NCBI GenBank assembly: GCA_010909165.1
Contig: MU008193.1
Coordinates: 1 to 64,000, forward strand
DNA from: Anthoceros angustus
Lineage: Eukaryota > Plantae > Anthocerotophyta
DNA: 64,000 bases
Reading direction: 5' to 3'
A program made the translations under genes and the position numbers. The notes beneath the pieces are model-generated. The model saw only the letters and a list, made by a program, of their open reading frames with translations, searched no databases and was not told the DNA's origin. Of the stretch, positions 847 to 60,200 are shown one piece after another; position 1 is the stretch's first letter, and each line of letters begins with the position of its first letter.

Positions 847-3800
847 ATGGCTGGAGTGATCAATAATGAAGAACAAAGCTCCTAATTTATTATTGGGTAA
901 TGATAATGCTAACACTTCATTGCATTATCATTATGGTGACAGCTTCAAAGAGAAAGATAGATTCAATGGAAGGGATTATGACATCCGGTCATTGAGAATG
1001 CGAGGAGCTTTGCGGCAAAGAGACCTTTGGGGCATCCGATGGATCAATTCCAAGGCCACGCCCGATTTGAACGTGAACTTCAACCTTCCGGGACGCCAGG
1101 ACTAGAAGGCACAAGATTTATTGGTCATGGACTTTCTCAACATATGGTGAGACATGTCGCACACGCAAAGACCTCCAAGGATATGTGGACTCACCTTGCT
1201 CAATTATATTCATCTCGAGATGTAATGAGTATTGTTGCACACGTAACTTCCGCAACCTCTCAATGAAGGAGTCCGACACCATCGAACATCATGTTAATGC
1301 ATTTCGATTGCACGATCCCATTTGGAATCTTCAAGGCGTACCTATCTAGATGGAGGCTTACGTCATTCTCTTATCTTCATTGCCACCTTCTTATAGGGCT
1401 TTCATTACAACTCAAAATGCGAATTCGCAATGTCGAAAAGCAGATGAAGATCCAAATGAAGAGCATCGAGCCCGAACTTATTGGAGCATTGCTACAGGAG
1501 GAGGCAAGCGACGTCATCATCACTCAGCCAACAAGCAGTGGTGATGTATTCACAAAGGGGTAGAGGAAGAGGACGAGGCGAGGCCGAGGTTCTACTTTCC
1601 AGACCCCATATCCCCGCACATACTTTCCATGATGGAGAGGCATCTTCTTCAACACCGCAAGAGGTAACAAGAAGATCGGGATTATATGTAATTGGTGCGT
1701 AATCCCAAATCACATGGAAAAGGATTGTCGTAAGAAGAAGAATGGGGAACCTCGCAAGGAGGCCCCACGAGCTAACATTGCAAAAGAAACAATCTTCCTC
1801 AACTCAGGTTTCACGTGTGCTTGGCTTCTTCCAAGCCCTCCAATACCTCATGGTACTTAGTGGAGCTACTTCACATATTTGTTACAACAAACTCTTTTGA
1901 GTCTTACTCACCAGTGACATCACCGTCCTCCGGAGATGATCACAACCTACCCATTGCGGTGTCGGGGCTTGTATTCAAGTGTGATTCAGTCGTTCTTCAT
2001 CTTCATCACGTCCTCCATGTTCCTTCAATGTGCAAGAATCTAGTATCATAAGTCTTTGTCAAGAACACACTAGTGATCCTTTATGAGATAGTTGTCTTCT
2101 CTCTTTCATAAGTGATAGAAACTATACAATCAGTGCACTTTAGATGATGGTCTCTATAGATTGTCAAGACAAGTGGGAGCCACCCATTCGCTAATGTTGC
2201 CATTCCAAACCATGACACCTACCCAAACCATGCTTTGGCATTGTCGCCTTGGTCATCCTAATAGTCAAAAATTAATCCAAATGTCTAAGGAGCTTTATAT
2301 AGAACCCTTGCCTTGCAAAGGTTGAACACCTACCTTGGTGCGAATCTTGTGTCCTCACTAAACGACATCAAGAGCCTTTCAAAATAAATCTCCACAAAGG
2401 GCCAAGTCACCTTTAGAGATAGTGCACACAGACATTTGTGGACCCTTGTCTACACCTCCTTTAGTGGTAGTAGATATTTTTGACCTTCACAGATGATTTC
2501 TCTGCTTTGTCTTTTCCTACATCTGAAAAACAAGAGTGATGCCTTTCACTTCTTCAAGGACTACATGAAATAGAGACTTGATCACAAACTCAAGACCTTA
2601 CGTTCCGACAATGGTGGAGAGTTTACATCATGAATTTGAGGATTTTTGTCGAGTCAAGGTATAGCTCAACAACTTCATTGTCTACACTCCTCAACAAAAT
2701 GGCGTGAGAACAAGAATCTACGCCCAAGAGATCATGTGTTGCTTATTGGTACAAGCTAAGTTATCTAAGGCTTATTGGGAGGCCCTCCTAAAGAACCTAT
2801 CTCATGAATCGATTGCCTACATCAGCAGTTCAAGGTATGACTCCATATGAAGCATTCATTGGCAAGAAGCCTTCTATTGACCACCTTCAATTTTTGGATC
2901 CCTGATGTTTTTATTCCCAAAGCATTGCGTAAGAAGTTGGATCCCAAAGCAAAAGTACACTTTCATTGGCTACAGAAGGTATCAAAGGGTACAAATTGTT
3001 CAACCCTTCTACAAGGCAACTTTTATACGCCCGAGTGTTACTTTTCATGAGTCTTACCTCTTTTCCCCAGGAGCTGATAGGCTTGGTCCTCCTCTTGATG
3101 AGACCATTGACCCTTCTTATTTTGATGATCGATTATTTCACTCCATTTCCCATTCGCTCGTGTTCCTTTAGTTGAACCTATTATGCGGAGGAGGAGGAGT
3201 TAGCATCTATTCCACAACTACAACTCAACCGCACTGATGTTGACATCCCAGGAGGGCGCTTGACACTCATGATGATGAGTTTGATGACCCTCGGAGGATG
3301 ACATTGTGGAGCCAGCAGATCCGCTGTTGATCCCGCCTCTGGATGATGCACTGCACAAAGGTACAACCTTAGATCCCGACCTACTATCTCAGGTCCTGCA
3401 GGTTGGAAGGAACCTCCTTTAGGATACCTAGCTGTTTTTGATGATCCTATACCCCCTATATCACTTTATTCTCAAGCTGTCTACAAGGCAACTATAGACC
3501 CAGAAGAACCTCTTACCTTAAAACAAGCTTTCTCTTCGAAAAAGACTTATGGAAGGTAGTCAGAGATTCCGAATATAATTCCCTAGTTAATAACTCTACA
3601 TGGAATTGGTCAAACCACCTAGGGTAGGAAGATAGTAACCAGCAAATGGGTATTCAAAATTAAAAGAAAAGGAGATGGTTCTATAGAAAGGTATAAGGCA
3701 CGCCTAGTAGAGGTTTTACACAAATTCTGGTCTAGATTACATACCTTGGGCCACTTATGCCCCAAGAGCCAAATTTGCCACACTTAATGATATTTGCCTT

Positions 3801-5003
3801 ATGTGCCCAACATGATCTTGAACTCCACATGATGGATGTTAAGACAAAGATATTTGTATGGCTACCGCAAGAGGAAATATACATGAGACAACCCGAGGGA
3901 AGTCAAAGGCAAAGAAGATTGGGTATGCCGACTCATCAAAGGTTTGTATGGCCTTAAGCAACAGCAAGAATTGGAACTTAACCATACATGTACAACTTAT
4001 TGGGAGAGGATTTAAGCAAAGCCGTGGTGATGCTTGTATGTACATCCTAATATCGCAATGATATATTTTATCTTCTACTTTATGTTGATGATGTTTTTAT
4101 GGCAACAAACTCCTCACTCTCCTAGCGAAACTAAAGCATGGCTTAGGACTCTATTTGAGATGTCCGATCTAGGAGAAATGACATATGCACTTGGTGTTAA
4201 TATTATACAAATAGAGGTAATAAGACTCTAAGTATAGTTCAAACCAAGTATATTAAGGAGAGTTTAGCTAAATTTGGACTTGAGGATGCAAAGCTGCACC
4301 CACATTTTGCAAGTGGTGTTAGGCTTACCTCATATGAGTCCCAAAACAAACAAGAAAAGCTAGAAATGTCTTCCATACCGACATGCCGCTATAACCTAAT
4401 ATATTTATGCAATTTTACGAGACGATATATCTTTTGTCCACAATTCTTGAGAGAACCACGTGAATGGATGTCCTGCGTATATTCGATACCTTAAAGGCAC
4501 TATGTACACAGGGATCGATGTTCAAGCATACACCAGCTATCAACACATTAACTCTAACGGCATATGCCGATGCCGACTATGTGACCCACACACGAAAAAT
4601 CAGATGTGGTATGTATTACTCTTAGGAGGAGCACCAATATCTGGTCAAGTAAGAAACAACCTACTATAGCTTTGTCATCCGAATCGAGTAGGTACTAACC
4701 TCGTTTCTAAAGACATAGTGTGGTCCAAAGTTAGTTTTGAGTGAACTTCACCATCCTCAACTTAAGCCTACATCTTTGTTTAGTGATAGCAGGTGCCATT
4801 GCACTTGCACGAAATCGCTTTTCATTCTAGAACTAAACATATATTGAGTATCACTACATAAGGGAAAAGTTAGAAGATCAAACCATAAATATTAGTTATG
4901 TTCAAACTTTAGACAATGCCGCGATTTATTAACAAAGTCATTGGGAATTGAGTTACATAGGAAACACATGAAATGTTTGGGTATAATGGACACAAACCTT
5001 TAA
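847..5003 (+). pseudogene. gag-pol: Copia A1 gag-pol, frameshifted
   Basis: Gag KDRFNGRDY..LRQRDLWG (~950-1035); CCHC knuckle (~1688-1730); protease WYLxxGATSHI (~1850-1880); LWHCRLGHP (~2230); integrase VHTDICGP, LRSDNGGEF, YTPQQNG; RT KWVFKIKRKGDGSIERYKARLV and YVDD (~4081); RNase H KKQPTIALS, RTKHI. Confidence 0.93.
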
Positions 5004-5031
5004 CCTAATACTCACCCTAGTAGCCTTAGAT

Positions 5032-6354
5032 TTAAGATAACCTTAAAATCTTAGCCCAAAAATTATTGTCTTACTATTTTTCTGAACATTTTTCTTCTTC
5101 TATCTCAAAATAGCTTAGGTCATCCCCGCCTTCCTCTTCATAGACGGCCAACATAGAACCTGGAATATTTATATTAAAAAAAAATAATATTTAAGCAGTA
5201 TTTATGTGATTAAAACAATAAATTCCCTTAGCACCAAAGGCACCTCAAAATATGTTTGATATGTCCTGGAAATTCCTCACATGGGAGACTTGCTATTTTT
5301 ATCATGTGGATGGTAGTTTCACATATATAGGAGTCCGGACATCTCCCCTTTTCACTTAAACCTAAGGTGAGTATGTATACTTTATTTTCCTGGTCACCTT
5401 TTGGTAGAATTCGGCTTATAATAGCCCATGTTTTTGTCTTTAATACACTTAGGGAAACAAAATGTGTTTACATCATCAGAAAATTTATGCTAGGTTATTA
5501 CCGATCCTAAAACTCATATAGAAATTAGGATGCTTAAATGGATAACCCTTATTTAATATATTGCACCTTTCTTTTCCAGCCCTTCCTTGTCATATCCTCC
5601 CCATGCCGTCTCCACCCATCGCGCAAACGCCACCACACAAGTGTCGCCTCTTATCCATCAAGGTTAGCATCCTTGTAATCCACTTGTGTCATAGCTTCTT
5701 CTTAGAAGCATAAGATGGGCAGCAATCTTTCCTACAAACACTTTTGGCGGTGGGCTTTTGGAGCATCATTCATTGAGAGGGAGGGCACGTCCTCATCACC
5801 TAGGCTGCCTCCCCTTTGGTGAGCACATCCGAATTGCTTCACAAATGAAGACATGGCGGAAATGAAGACATGGCGTGAAAATGAAGACAATCTTACACTT
5901 CGGACTTGGCTTTCCTCTTGCTGGAGCGTCCTGAGGATCCTTAGGCATCTCTCGTTCGCTTCATCCTCCGAGGATGAGGTCGATCAATGACAAATGCGGA
6001 GATTTCTTTACGAAAGGTCAGGACGAGGTCCGTGGAGGCAGACTCTTCATCACCAGCAGGGACACGATGGATGCATCAGCGTAGGGGCGCCCGTCCTTTT
6101 GTTTGGGCGCCAGGCGCCGTGAGCGCCCCTTGCTCGCAAGGACGGACGGGCGGAAGGCGCGCCTACGGCGGCGCGCCGCGCGGCGAGAGGGCGCGGGCTC
6201 GGGGACACGGCGCGATGGCGCCCACGTCGCGCCTCCCGTGATCAGCGCGCCTTGCGGTAGCCACCCTCGCCATCGCCATCACCGCACATGTACCAACCAC
6301 CAAGTTGTCGGGATCGCGTTTCGTGAAGTTTGAGGAAGAAGGGGTATTATCCAT
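5032..6354 (-). CDS. Antisense accessory gene of copia A1 (frameshifted; one or two ORFs), unknown function, Cys/His motif
   Basis: Minus-strand translation matches A2 41237-41870 at protein level (LPxGD, SYxCE, IHMIK, FPGH, CxWC, VYEExG, FEIEEE, WAKILRL*) and ends at the same stop. Candidate ATGs at 6354 and 5871/5854. Confidence 0.72.
5845..5889. repeat. Short tandem repeat (~17-18 bp, ~2.5 copies) aatgaagacatggcg...
   Basis: aatgaagacatggcgga aatgaagacatggcgtgaa aatgaagaca; each full unit contains a minus-strand gccATG. Confidence 0.8.
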
Positions 6355-6405
6355 TATCCTTTTGATTTTCCTTTTCGGAAATTAGGGTATTTTCTGGATT
6401 TTCCT

Positions 6406-6416
6406 CTATATATAAA
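6406..6416 (-). promoter_or_regulatory. Candidate TATA box for the antisense gene
   Basis: tttatatatag on the minus strand ~55 nt upstream of ATG 6354, with an accctaa telo-box-like word in between. The motif can be read on either strand. Confidence 0.4.
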
Positions 6417-6506
6417 TCCGCTTAAATACTTTTAATTAGTTTTAATTCCACCTATTTACTGAAGTTGAGTTATTAGTTTCTCATCTCAGTTCTCCTTAAG
6501 TGGGAG

Positions 6507-6877
6507 TTATTTTAATAGTGATTATTACTTTCAGTTTTTACCTTAAGTTTTACTTTATGCCTTTAAGTAAAGTTTAGTTAGGGACTAGTTTTTACTAGAC
6601 TAGTTTTTCCTAGACCTCTTTTGGTCGAAAATCACCCCTAGTTCATAGTGAGTGGGAGTGATAAAATAGCTTACTATTAGGGCACTCTTCACTAGGGCAC
6701 CTAGGACTTAATAATTAATTTAGTCCTTAGGGCTCTAGGTAGTTTCTTTTAGTAGTTATTTAATTGGTTAGTTGTTACAACCACTTATTGGTTACAACTA
6801 CCTTGCCTACATAAAGGCATGTACTTTCATTATGAATGTAATGCAACACATATTGCTAGAGCTGTATGATTCTCATC
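6507..6877 (+). repeat. A1 3' LTR (~370 bp; start approximate), preceded by PPT aagtgggag 6498-6506
   Basis: Purine tract followed by an AT-rich block whose end matches 35-76. Confidence 0.7.
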
Positions 6878-7329
6878 GCCACAAACGGCGATGAGGATGC
6901 TCTATAATGGCAAGCTAAGGATCAAAGCTTGCTCATTTTGATCCTCTATGTGGATGATATGCTAATTGTCGAACGATCGATGAGATTTCGCTTGAAGTCA
7001 AAGTTGAATGCTCATTTTGAAATGAGACGGGAGAGGCGAGCTACATACTTGGCATGCATATTCCTACAGTATATAAGCCCCGCTTATTTGTCTGACGGAA
7101 TACATTAGGTGCTTCAACGCTTCAACATGGAGAAGGGGAAGCCATTGGTACCCATTGCCTCCATATGTGAAACTTTCTGCCGGATTGCCCAAGCTCGAGG
7201 AGGACAAATGAAATGGAGAAGGTCCCATACTCATCACCGAGGGAGTTTGATGTATGCAATGATTGCTACACGCCCCACATTGCCTTTGCGTTGGAGTGGT
7301 TAGTGTTTTGCCAAACCTCGCAAGCATTG
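6878..7329 (+). pseudogene. pol: Copia B1 RT fragment
   Basis: QAKDQSLLILILYVDDML and MEKVPYSS..GSLMYAMIAT; homologous to B2 57700-58145 on the minus strand. Confidence 0.9.
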
Positions 7330-37868: not shown

Positions 37869-40800
37869 TATGTAATCCCAAATCACATGAAAAGGATTGT
37901 CGAAGAAGAAGAATGGGGAACCTCGCAAGGAGGCCCCACCGAGCTAACATTGCACAAGAAACAATCTTCCTCAACTCCAGAAGGTTTCACGTGTGCTTGG
38001 CTTCTTCCAAGCCCTCCAATACCTCATGGTACTTAGAGGTGGAGCTACTTCACATATTTGTTACAATGAAACTCTTTGAGTCTTACTCACCACAGGTGAC
38101 ATCCCCGTCCTCCGAGATGATCACAACCTACCCATTGCGGTGTTGGTTCGTATTCAAGTGTGATTCAGTCGTTCTTCATCTTCATCACGTCCTCCATGTT
38201 CCTTCAATGTGCAAGAATCTAGTATCACCGCAAGTCTTTGTCAAGAACACACTGCGGTGATCCTTTATGCGATAGTTGTCTTCTCTCTTTCATAAGTGAT
38301 AGAAACTATACTGCATGTGCACTTTAGATGATGGTCTCTATAGATTGTCGACAAGTGGGAGCCACCCATTAATGTTGCCATTCCAAACCCAAATGACACC
38401 TACCCAAACCATGCTTTGGCATTGTCGCCTTGGTCATCCTAATAGTCAAAAATTAATCCAAATGTCTAAGGGAGCTTTATATAGAACCCTTGCCTTGCAA
38501 AGGTTGAACACCTACCTTGGTGCGAATCTTGTGTCCTCACTAAACGACATCAAGAGCCTTTCAAAATAAATCTCCACAAAGGGCCAAGTCACCTTTAGAG
38601 ATAGTGCACATGACATTTGTGGACCCTTGTCTACACCCTCCTTTAGTGGTAGTAGATATTTTTGACCTTCACGATGATTTCTGCTTTTGTCTTTTCCTAC
38701 ATCCCGAAAAACAAGAGTGATGCCTTTCACTTCTTCAAGGACTACATGAAATGGGTGAGAGACTTCATCACAAACTCAAGACCTTACGTCCGACAATGGT
38801 GGAGAGTTTACATCTCGAATTTGAGGATTTTGTCGAGTGAAGGTATAGCTCAACAACTTACGCTTGTCTACACTCCTCAACAAAATGGCGAGCCGAGAAC
38901 AAGAATCTACGCCCAAGAGATCACGTTGCTTATTGGTACAAGCTAAGTTATCTAAGGCTTATTGGGCGAGGCCCTCTAAAGAACCTATCTCATGAATCGA
39001 TTGCCTACATCAGCTTCAAGGTATGACTCCATATGAAGCATTCATTGGCAAGAAGCCTTCTATTGACCACCTTGAATTTTTGGATCCCGCATATGTTTTT
39101 ATTCCCAAAGCATTGCGTAAGTTGGATCCCAAAGCCTAAGTACACTTTCATTGGCTACACCGAAGGTATCAAAGGGTACAAATTGTTCAACCCTTCTACA
39201 AGGCAACTTTTATACGCCCGGAGTGTTACTTTTCATGAGTCTTACCTCTTTTCCCCAACAGTGGGAGCTGATCAGATTGGTCCTTCTCTCGATGAGACCA
39301 TTGACCCTTCTTATTTTGATGATACTGATTATCTCACTCCATTTCCCATTCTCGCTTCTCGTGTTCCTTTAGTTGAACCTATTATGCAGGAGGAGGAGGA
39401 GTTAGCATCCATTCCACAACCTGGTACAACTCAACCAGACGAACCTGATGTTGACATCCCAGCAGAGGCACCAGTTGACACTCATGATGATGAGTTTGAT
39501 GACCCGAGGATGACATTGTGGAGCCAGATCCTCCGTTGATCCCGCTCCCCGTGGATGATGCACTGCACAAAGGTACAACCTTAGATCCCGACCTACTATC
39601 TCAGTCCTGCAGTTGGAAGGAACCTCCTTTAGGATACCTAGCTTTTTGATGATCCTATACCCCTATATCACTTTATTCTCAAGCGTCTACAAGGCAACTA
39701 TAGACCCAAGAACCTCTTACCTTAAAACAAGCTTTCTCTTCGAAAAAGACTTATGGAAGGTAGTCAGATTCTCGAATATAATTCCCTAGTTAATAACTCT
39801 ACATGGAATTGGTCAAACCACCTAGGGGTAGGAAGATAGTAACCAGCAAATGGGTATTCAAAATTAAAAGAAAAGGAGATGGTTCTATAGAAAGGTATAA
39901 GGCACGCCTAGTAGCGAGGTTTTACACAAATTCTGGTCTAGATTACATACCTTGGGCCACTTATGCCCCAAGAGCCAAATTTGCCACACTTGAATGATAT
40001 TTGCCTTATGTGCCCAACATGATCTTGAACTCCACATGATGGATGTTAAGACAAAGATATTTGTATGGCGCAAGAGGAAATATACATGAGACAACCCGAG
40101 GGTTACGAAGTCAAAGGCAAAGAAGATTGGGTATGCCGACTCATCAAAGGTTTGTATGGCCTTAAGCGCAAGAATTGGAACTTAACCATACATGTACAAC
40201 TTATTGGGAGAGGATTTAAGCAAAGCCGTGGTGATGCTTGTATGTACATCCTAATATCCGCAATGATATATTTTATCTTCTACTTTATGTTGATGATGTT
40301 TTTATGGCAACAAACTCCCTCACTCCTAGCGAAACTAAAGCATGGCTTAGGACTCTATTTGAGATGTCCGATCTAGGAGAAATGACATATGCACTTGGTG
40401 TTAATATTATACGAAATAGAGGTAATAAGACTCTAAGTATAGTTCAAACCAAGTATATTAAGGAGAGTTTAGCTAATTTGGACTTGAGGATGCTGCACCC
40501 ACACCTTTTGCAAGTGGTGTTAGGCTTACCTCGGATATGAGTCCCAAAACAATGAAGAAAAGCTAGAAATGTCAGTTCCATACCGACATCTTTGTTGGCA
40601 CTCTAATATATTTATAATTTACGAGACCGATATATCTTTTGAAGTCGCCTCACAATTCTTGGAGAATCGGCGTGAGCCTTTGGATGTCTGTTATATTCGG
40701 TACCTTAAAGGCACTATGTACACGGGATCGATGTTCAAGCATACACCAACATCTAACACTCACGGCATATCGATGCCGATTATCTTGGTGACCCATACAA

Positions 40801-41210
40801 GAAAATCGATGTATGTTACTCTTGGGAGGAGCACCAATATCATGGTCAAGTAAGAAACAACCTACTATAGCTTTGTCTAGCGAGTCGAGTACAGTCCTTA
40901 CCTCTAAAGATATCGTATGGTCTAGGTTAGTTTTGAGTGAACTCCACCATTCTCAACTTAAGCCTACATCTTTGTTTAGTGATAGCCGGGCCATGCACTT
41001 GCTAGAACCCTTTTTCATTCTAGAACAAACATATAGCGGTTGAGTATCATTATATTAGAGAAAAGTTAGAAGATAAAACAATAGATATATTAGTTATGTT
41101 CAAACTTTAGACAATCTTGTGATTTATTAACAAAGTCATTGGAATTGAGTTACATAAAACACATGAAATGTTTAGGTATCCTGGACACCCACCAAACCTT
41201 CTACCTAAAG
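37869..41210 (+). pseudogene. pol: Copia A2 gag end and pol, frameshifted
   Basis: Near-identical to A1 1699-~4380; MLWHCRLGHPNSQKL; KWVFKIKRKGDGSIERYKARLVAR; LLLYVDDVF; WSSKKQPTIALS. Confidence 0.92.
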
Positions 41211-41236
41211 TTCATCCTAGCGACTAATGGGCCTAT

Positions 41237-41870
41237 TTAAAATAACCTCAAAATTTTAGCCCATATTGTTTTATTTTTCACAAACTTATTTCTTCCTCCT
41301 CTATCTCAAAGAAGCAAATATTGTCTTTTCCTTGTTCCTCATAGACGGTCCATAAACATCCTGATTTATATTGGAATAATAATTAATGCCAGTTTTTGTA
41401 TGCATTAAATCAACCATATATGTTTTTCCTAACACCAATCACACTTACGGAAAACATGAGTAGTGTGCCCTGGAAAATCCAAACTATAGGCACATTTGGT
41501 TTTGATCATATGGATTCCCGTCACTTCACAAACATATGAGTATGGGACATCCACCTTGCTAGGGCCTCCTTTTGTCAATACTACACTTTATCATAATCAC
41601 CTAATGGGAGATATTCGGATCGTAAAAGCCTATACTCTTCACTTCATTAGGCTCAGATAGTTGTAGTCTTCGCACCTGTGACACACAAGGATCAAGAAGG
41701 TTAGAACAATAAGACAAATTGAAAAGGAAACAAAACTAGAAACTCAAATTAGGAATCAACATATACCTTTTCATTCTCATTTTCCTTTCCTTTCCTTTTC
41801 TTTTCCTTTCCATCCTTCTTCCCCTTTTCTCTCCTTCATCCTCCACTGCACCACCCGCACTGCATGTGCC
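41237..41870 (-). CDS. Antisense accessory gene of copia A2 (3' part; 5' part displaced by the H1 insertion)
   Basis: KSIGFYDPN..LPLGD..VLTKGGPSKVDVPYSYVCEVTGIHMIKTKCAYSLDFPGHTTHVFRKCDWC..VYEEQGKDNICFFEIEEE..WAKILRLF*. Confidence 0.72.
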
Positions 41871-57245: not shown

Positions 57246-60200
57246 TCATGCCCATGTCCGAGCTTGTGCAAATTGTCGTAGAGAGTCCCTTGGTAAGAAT
57301 ATCTCAGGTTCTGGTGTGAACCTTGACAAGTTGTACCCTCTTGTCATCAACACCTCTCGAATGAAGTGATACTTCACATCCACATGTTTAGTCTTCGCAT
57401 GAAACATCGGATTCTTTGCCAATAGCACCTATCACAATGCAACACCGGCACAACCTTGATCCCCAAGTCTCCACTAAACGAGCAAGCCATATGGCTTCCT
57501 TGCAAGCCTCGCTTGTGCAACATACTCGGCCTGGTAGATAGCGTAATGCACGATCGCAAACGAGATCGCCATGAGATCGCCTCCAAAGGCACGTGAAGAC
57601 ATAACTGATGTGGACCTCCTTTTGTCCATATCCTCGAGATAATCCACATGCATCTTCACTACCCAACCACACATGCATCTTCACTACCAATAAACCTCGC
57701 TAACCACTCCTAACGCAAAGGCAATGTCGACGGTAGCAATCATTGCATACATCAAACTCCCTACATTGATGAGTATGGGACCTTCTCCATTTCAGCTTTG
57801 TCCTCCTCGAGCTTGGGCAATCCGCGCTTGAAAGTTTCACATATGGAGGCAATGGAGTACCCAATGGCTTCCTTCTCCATGTTGAAACGTTGAAGCACTA
57901 ATGTATTCCGTCTCGAGACAAATAAAGGACGCTTATGTCTTCGACGACGCATGCCAAGTATATGGCTCGCCTCCCAAGTCTCGCTATTTCAAAGTGAGCA
58001 TTCAACTTTGACTTCAACAAATCTCATCAAGATCGCTCCCAAAGAATTAGCATATCATCCACATAGAGGATCAAAATGAGCAAGCTTTGATCCTTAGCTT
58101 GCTTCAGATAGAGGCAATGATCCTCATCGCCACGCTTTGTAGCCTTGAGAAAGCATAAATGAGTGGAACTTGTGATACCACTGGGTGCTGTTTCAAACCA
58201 TAAAGGCTCTTCCTCAACCTCGCACACCGATTCTCTTGCCCTTCTCAACAAAACCTTCTCGTTGCCGCATGTATCTTGAAGGTCACCATGCAAGAATGCC
58301 GCCTTGACATCCATCCGCATAAGTTCCATATCATCCGCAACCAAAGCAAGAACACATCGCAAAGTTGTCATTTTGACTCGGTGAGAAAATCTCATCAAAG
58401 TCAATGCCTCGTTGTTGCTTGAAACCCTTAGCAACCAATCGTGCCTTGTACTTTGGTTTGCTATGACCTTCATCTTGTACACCCATTTGCACTGAGTGCC
58501 TTCTTATCCTAGGCAACCAAACCAACTCCCAAGTTTGGTTCTTATGCAAATAATTCATCGATCGCATGGCCTTCTCCCACTTCTGTTACTGCTGACATGG
58601 CCTCTTTGTAAGAAGAGGGTTCCCCACAATCACAAGATACATAATCCAGATGGATCATCCCGCTGAGGTCGTAATCCGCCTCGACCTAAAGCACGTGCAC
58701 CTCTATAGGAGCTTGTTCGACTTTTCATCTATCGGTGGAGGAATGTGCTCCGCACATTACCACTATCAACCCGCCATGATGATCATGTCCATCTTCTTGA
58801 AGATCACCCTTCGCACCTCCACAGCTTGGAGTAGGCTTCGTGCATCTTGTTCTCATTGAAGAACACGTTAGTACGAACAACCTTTCTAGCCTCGATCCCA
58901 CAAACGGTATCCCATCTCACTGAATCACCATAGCCAAGAAAAATACATTTCTTGGACTTAGGTGCCAACTTGTCCCGAAACTCTTTTGGAACATGGCAAG
59001 ATGCCTCACGCCCAAACACTCGCAGATGCTTGTAGGATGGTTTCTTTCCGCACCATAGCTCGAACTCGCTCATCAAATTTTATTAGGAGATCGTTAATAA
59101 GATGAACTGCAGAGACACGCCGCCCAAAACCCATTAGGCAATCCGAGTTTGACAACAAACTACGCATCCTCTCCGAATGGTTCTGCTCATCCGCCACCAC
59201 ACCATTTTGTGGAGGAGTATACGAAATTCTTTTGATTCCCTTGGAATCAGAATGACCGAAAGCTGAAACATACTTCCACCATTATCCGCCCTTAGACACT
59301 TCAATCGGCTGATCGATTCTCTACAAGGGTGACAAATTTCAAACACCGTAACTTCATCCTTTTTCCTCAAAGGATAAACCCACACCTTGCGTGAGAAATC
59401 ATCTATGAAAGTGACAAAATAGAGGCACCGCCTAATGATGTAAGAGGCATAGGTCCACATACATCACGTGAACCAACTCAAGAGGTTTACTTCTACTTTT
59501 CTTGTTCGATGTGATGATTTTGTCTGCTTCCCATATAAACAAAGGCTCACACATCGAGAGATCGAGAAGTTAAGAACAGGATATAACCGTAACGAGATAA
59601 AACCTTCATTCCCTTCTCGAGACATATGTCCTAACCGCAATGCCACAAGGAAACATTTTGGCTCGCACGATCACATGATCGATGTGTTTACTCAAGTGAG
59701 TACAAAGTGCCACACTTCGATCCACGAGCTAACACAAGAGAACCTTTGGAGATCTTCCAAGAGTGATCCCCAAACCAAGTGGTAACCAAAGATCATCCAA
59801 GCCCCGCGCTAATCATGCTCTTGTCAACTTAACATGCCTAACGCCCTTCAAAGATGAATGAAGATCCGTTGTCAAACTTGAGTTGCACATCACCACGCCG
59901 CGATCCGGCATAGTTATTTCCAAGCCTAACGCATCCTTTCCTTGTAGCATCATACGCTAAACCACTCTATGAGGAGTAACATGGAAAGATGCACCGAGTC
60001 AATTATCCAATTGCGTAATAAATGACTATCCACGCAGATTCAAGTAAGAAGAGATAAGGACATCTCCGCCTCAACCGTAGTTTAACTCTTCCAACCGATG
60101 CATAAGTCGCCTTCTTGTCGCCCCGCTTCTCTTTTCCTTGGTCCTTTTGAACTTCTCGCACTCTCTTTGAAGTGACCCTTTGTGACAATAGTGACACTCC

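Follow-up and report, generated by a model that had tools for sequence, protein, structure and literature searches.

Two stretches of the minus strand, 5092-5410 in one copy of a retrotransposon (A1) and 41290-41613 in another (A2), are probably the remains of an antisense accessory gene of a Ty1/copia lineage, probably a spliced one, which is dead here. Both copies lie in the window, by which we mean the whole stretch of 64,000 nucleotides of Anthoceros angustus DNA that was analysed. The gene would be protein-coding, run in the direction opposite to gag-pol and occupy the spacer that separates pol from the 3′ LTR. The observation behind this reading is real over about 340 bases, in which the minus strand is statistically coding-like when the two copies are compared. 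The antisense unit is broken in both window copies, no open minus-strand stretch being longer than 79 codons in A1 or 52 in A2. An earlier note on this DNA had proposed a conserved antisense gene over the much longer span 5032-6354. The likeness of the antisense peptides holds for 5092-5435 against 41290-41639, whereas it does not extend to 5436-6354, for which A2 has no counterpart.

The carrier is a Ty1/copia LTR retrotransposon, with integrase before reverse transcriptase, LTRs, a primer binding site and a polypurine tract. The order of the Pfam domains on the pieces of A1 and A2 (Retrotran_gag_2, gag_pre-integrs, SH3_retrovirus and then RVT_2) bears out the assignment made in the earlier note. 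In A1, all of whose element features are on the plus strand, the window start cuts the 5′ LTR, so that its end remains at 1-76; it finishes in CA and is directly followed by a primer binding site of the initiator tRNA-Met type at 77-89, read from the sequence. The gag-pol region, delimited by ORF fragments, Pfam matches and indels relative to A2, extends over 866-5003 with many small length differences, and its pol stop is 5001-5003. Between pol and the polypurine tract (6333-6345, also read from the sequence) there is a spacer of about 1.35 kb, and the 3′ LTR lies next to the tract at 6346-6877, with an approximate start and an end that matches that of the 5′ LTR. The matching ends of the LTR pair measure 41 bases (35-75 against 6840-6877, 93% identity). 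Moreover, contigs of the sequencing run X1, an independent set of DNA data, that leave the 3′ LTR at 6877 go on with the letters of the primer binding site, and the word depth in this run is in the hundreds to 2000 from 6416 on. The coordinates confirm the proposed placement of the stretch discussed here, downstream of pol, before the 3′ LTR and on the other strand. The flank of the 3′ LTR, 6870-7303, matches an inverted stretch at 57700-58151 at 84%, so that A1 is nested in another repeat family. Most of the window is purine-skewed, G+C-rich, gypsy-like DNA.

Copy A2 spans 37872 to about 41900 and is truncated at both ends. Its gag end and pol, 37872-41240 on the plus strand and truncated at the 5′ side, match A1 1699-5218, and the pol frame ends at 41238-41240. 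No further copy of the element was found by tblastn in the 64,000-nt window. The two pol regions are 96.8% identical in aligned columns, with no excess of differences at third positions, and they are separated by 101 indels of 1-7 bases over 3.3 kb (1699-5003 against 37872-41203). Small indels are thus about as numerous as substitutions (about 3%) between the pol copies, and gaps also outnumber letter changes when A1 is compared with the short-read contigs of run X1. This load of small indels points to assembly indel errors in repeats or to strongly deletion-biased decay. The identity per 60-base window, 0.84-0.98 before about 5080 and 0.62-0.80 after it, switches from about 0.9 to about 0.7 just downstream of pol, at about 5080 in A1 and 41280 in A2. 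From the pol end to about 5450 in A1 and 41656 in A2, the DNA homology amounts to 67.5% over 585 columns. With pol nearly identical and the 3′ part diverged, the aligned copies are mosaics, the pol having been shared recently and the 3′ parts attached to it having diverged long ago. The switch at the pol end is most simply read as a recombination between copia lineages just downstream of pol, which suggests that the 3′ module was swapped between lineages.

The peptides quoted in the earlier note are indeed present on the minus strand where it had placed them, although each is a composite, of three frames in A1 and of four pieces in A2. The evidence base consists of two copies, both broken, and the frames were first chosen by eye; a test independent of frame is therefore given first. 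In this test, a frame-blind DNA alignment of the copies was scored by summing the best-frame BLOSUM62 score over gap-free blocks. The sum for the minus strand was 377, against 292 ± 19 for shuffles of columns within blocks (maximum 349, with 0 out of 2000 reaching 377), while the plus strand gave 270. A codon alignment guided by the eye-chosen frame was also made between A1 and A2 only, with five natural pieces and 90 codons. The differences at codon positions 1, 2 and 3 numbered 30, 25 and 45 (p 0.039), and the codon changes comprised 23 silent and 43 replacement ones. The resulting dN of 0.38 and dS of 1.70 correspond to a dN/dS of about 0.23 (0.225), whereas the other five frames over the same columns gave 0.58-1.65 with 7-16 stops. 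None of 500 column shuffles reached 0.225, even taking the best of three frames. Within the blocks, the length differences are net multiples of three, except for one single-base break in A2. This comparison of two copies shows that the minus-strand frame was held under purifying selection across the divergence of A1 and A2. Both the conservation at protein level put forward in the earlier note and the third-position and dN/dS check on the minus strand that it had suggested came out in favour of coding.

Other data touch the same stretch. It is present in run X1 at word depths of hundreds, and three-letter steps at 5245/5246 and 5318 separate its main form there from A1. A contig of run X2, from a second organism, shows seven differences from A1 in the acidic block described below, four of them at third positions; this is in line with coding, the sample being too small for a test.

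The same data could be read as an ordinary untranslated spacer, in which the peptide likeness is a by-product of DNA similarity in hand-picked frames. Such a spacer would explain why the frame has to be switched three to four times, why no start codon, homologue, fold or RNA was found, and why the last stop appears to be kept, lying as it does in near-identical DNA. Nevertheless, the plus strand and the two other minus-strand frames share exactly the same DNA similarity and give no signal, and shuffles that keep both the identity and the composition of the columns never reach the observed score or dN/dS. We thus consider the untranslated spacer unlikely.

The antisense gene that we prefer would be made up of several blocks, which are given here in A1 and A2 coordinates on the minus strand. 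The core block is found at 5246-5410 in A1, with 55 codons in one frame and no ATG at its head, and at 41449-41613 in A2, where there is one single-letter frame break near 41582. A tblastn search within the window aligned the A1 core with A2 at 45% identity (E 1.6e-7). The differences in this block are of synonymous type and its indels are net in-frame. The two cores share one invariant Cys and three invariant His. Upstream of it, a weak block of nine codons (5409-5435 in A1, with differences of 1/2/5 by codon position over these few codons) is in a frame that differs from that of the core in both copies. Downstream lies an acidic block, at 5092-5159 in A1 and, by the codon alignment, at 41290-41360 in A2. 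It includes 22 aligned codons with differences of 7/4/10 and one three-letter indel, and the first stop after it is 5074-5076 in A1 and 41278-41280 in A2.

Between the core and the acidic block there is an intron-like spacer, 5160-5245 in A1 and 41361-41448 in A2. The spacer of A2 has 88 bases, starts with GTAAGT and ends with CAG, and is in phase 1 on both sides: the core ends on the first base of a codon, directly before GTAAGT, and the two bases that complete this codon open the acidic block. The spacer of A1 has an acceptor AG at 5161-5160 and no usable donor. The A+T content is 0.76 in A1 and 73-81% for the two spacers together, and the indels between them have lengths of 3, 3, 1, 2, 5 and 4. 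Without splicing, the reading of either copy ends at a stop after five or six codons. In A1, the first 18 bases of the spacer (5245-5228) can be read through in frame up to the stop at 5228-5230, a reading that contains a CxWC motif, and in A2 the read-through reaches a stop at 41429-41431. This is where the CxWC motif and the kept stop of the earlier note fall; lying just past the likely splice donor, they would be read-through. The place of the donor in A1 (5245/5246) shows a three-letter length difference from the abundant X1 form, so that the missing donor would be private to A1. We think that splicing is likely from the signals of one copy, A2, and their context, GT and AG pairs being common, and we lean somewhat towards a spliced unit rather than an ORF that ends at 5228-5230. 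The earlier picture of a single ORF interrupted only by frameshifts is not supported, because the coding signal is split by the intron-like spacer. Nor is there support for the metal-binding site C..H..H..H..CxxC that had been suggested: its CxxC part is past the likely donor, no Pfam family matches, and the mean pLDDT of the predicted structure is 36. The invariant Cys and His residues of the core make a metal site no more than a guess.

The two ends of the unit deserve separate comment. At the downstream end, the final stop at 5032-5034 in A1 and 41237-41239 in A2, which had been counted as kept, is uninformative, since the copies are still 85-92% identical there. The proposed gap of about 30 nt between pol and the antisense gene is correct for A1 as it stands, but not for A2, where pol overlaps the antisense stop; the difference at the pol end corresponds to a five-letter length difference in A1. 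The overlap in A2, between the stop of pol and that of the last peptide on the minus strand, falls in a TTTAAA palindrome at 41235-41242. Where the frame ends cannot be read from A1, because the X1 form differs from it in length at 5089. On the minus strand, an AATAAA at 4925-4930, within conserved codons of the pol end, follows the antisense stops at a distance of about 100-150 bases and is a possible polyadenylation signal for the putative antisense transcript. At the upstream end, no ATG is present in the conserved part of either A1 or A2, so that the unit would have to include further upstream exons, unless the start was lost. A start at the ATG of 6354 is not supported: nothing in A2 corresponds to this region, and the one contig of X2 that covers the place shows a changed ATG, at 6352. 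A TATA-like palindrome on the minus strand near 6409-6417 precedes that ATG.

The rest of the A1 spacer, 5436-6332, to which no strand is assigned, is specific to the lineage and is not shown to be part of the antisense unit. A local alignment of 5436-6354 with A2 gave no counterpart clearly above shuffles, and homology beyond 5450, upstream on the minus strand, was rejected on the same grounds. The ORFs of 5436-6354 gave only self-matches by tblastn within the window, the six ORFs of 5732-6354 gave no match in Pfam, and this part of the spacer gave none in Rfam. A tandem repeat of about 16 bases, in two and a half copies, is found at 5843-5890. At 5990-6330 there is a G+C-rich patch, with a G+C content of 0.66 against 0.33 beside it, in an element that has 33-41% G+C. 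The patch, nearly missing from the word depth of run X1, could be a captured fragment or an insertion of a sub-lineage.

Such a patch brings up the possibility that the whole antisense stretch is a piece taken from a host gene or some other mobile element, captured in reverse by an ancestor and now passively carried with no role in the retrotransposon. LTR retrotransposons are known to transduce pieces of genes (PMC7264820), the patch gives the A1 spacer a foreign look, and splice-like signals would accompany a captured piece of a gene. On the other hand, both lineages join the stretch to pol in the same way, which indicates that the signature of selection arose while the stretch already belonged to the element. 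Besides, no host-like or transposon-like relative was found, and the high word depth in run X1 is not that of one or few copies. A passive capture seems to us quite improbable, and we retain the antisense gene of the element itself as the best explanation.

The search for relatives of this gene was broad. The six minus-strand pieces matched no Pfam family at E values up to 10, TRP28 included. A search of 1.84 billion representative proteins with a profile of the core returned a single match, to a bacterial repeat protein, which was rejected as spurious. The likeness between A1 and A2, about 40 bits, is itself at the threshold of the profile search, so the blank result excludes only close kin. 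The two putative exons of A2 were searched as separate natural pieces. A word-based protein search with the core and two pol pieces had no match, and neither did scans of metagenome and viral contigs with the core. When these contigs were scanned with a reverse transcriptase piece, two distant copia loci only were retrieved, with 42% identity, and the antisense pieces had no match at these two loci. The ESM Atlas held no match of at least 0.9. The structure check with AlphaFold that had been recommended was carried out with AlphaFold2 and yielded no confident fold. As for transcripts, the core at 5246-5410 was found in no run recorded as RNA; run X3, guessed to be RNA, has contigs that cover only 5786-6452. 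Expression from a promoter of its own, which the earlier note had put forward, is accordingly not supported.

A further proposal, that what is conserved is not a protein but a signal acting in cis in the RNA or DNA of the sense genome (serving, for example, packaging, priming of the plus strand or termination), is very improbable: such signals of retroelements do lie by the pol stop, upstream of the polypurine tract, but the folding energy of the two copies is no better than that of shuffles (z of -0.5 and -0.4), which makes a structured RNA signal unlikely, Rfam gives no match, and a three-base periodicity with saturation of silent sites is unexpected for an RNA signal.

The antisense gene may be pictured as follows. 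Transcription would start from a promoter at the LTR-proximal end, and the transcript would be spliced by removal of an AT-rich intron of 86-88 bases between a core containing Cys and His and an acidic tail. An intron that is antisense to the genomic RNA is not spliced from it and passes through reverse transcription. The intron of this unit would thus escape removal, be inherited through reverse transcription and survive retrotransposition. The small product would most likely serve the element itself, for example by tuning expression, copy number or silencing, as has been suggested for the gypsy antisense extra ORFs. More tentatively, and with slightly less than even confidence, we suggest that copia lineages of A. 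angustus regularly carry an intron-containing antisense gene between pol and the 3′ LTR, kept by selection through retrotransposition and exchanged between lineages by recombination just downstream of pol.

It is useful to compare this unit with the systems already described. In the reviews and surveys consulted, extra ORFs that lie antisense in the region from pol to the 3′ LTR are listed from gypsy elements only, namely gene23 of maize Grande, rice RIRE2, Silene Retand with its TRP28-domain ORFs, and fifteen families of bean, with the bean ORF2 (PMC7264820, PMC4093653, PMC11963269). The only extra ORF that they list for copia is the sense env-like ORF of SIRE-type elements (PMC4093653). These reports agree with what the earlier note had stated on both superfamilies. 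No antisense extra ORF of copia was found in the open literature, the subscription literature being largely outside the search. The A1/A2 unit resembles the gypsy antisense ORFs in its position between pol and the 3′ LTR, in its direction opposite to gag-pol, in being family-wide and in having a function that is not known. It differs from them in its carrier, which is Ty1/copia rather than gypsy of the Tat/Retand type, in having neither TRP28, PF04195 nor any other Pfam domain, in being apparently interrupted by an intron, and in length, as the ORFs of Retand exceed 600 bp and the visible coding part of the A1/A2 unit is about 80-100 codons. In terms of the aORF-3R class, the unit agrees in placement (between pol and the 3′ LTR, opposite strand, with coding evidence) and departs in carrier, domain and ORF length. 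Like the env-like ORF of SIRE, it is an additional coding region that follows pol in a copia element (PMC4093653), but the SIRE ORF is in sense direction and several hundred codons long; a sense env-like ORF was rejected for A1 and A2, whose plus strand is without coding signal.

The HBZ gene of HTLV-1 is alike in that it is read from the minus strand and sits at the 3′ end of its retroelement; a spliced form of it starts in the 3′ LTR. It belongs to an animal retrovirus and has no sequence relation with the A1/A2 unit, and its expression and function are established by experiment, whereas the unit is known from sequence alone. HBZ has been given before as an analogy for plant antisense ORFs (PMC11963269, PMC7264820). 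In plants, the extra genes carried by LTR retrotransposons come closest to the accessory genes of retroviruses, and a role is known for none of those that are antisense. If a spliced antisense gene of copia is confirmed, accessory functions would have arisen repeatedly in both superfamilies. Moreover, its intron would offer a handle for separating antisense mRNA from genomic RNA in expression data, in the same direction as the search for spliced antisense transcripts of extra ORFs that a review has called for (PMC7264820). The A1/A2 unit would then be to copia what the antisense ORFs are to gypsy, with the further layer of splicing.
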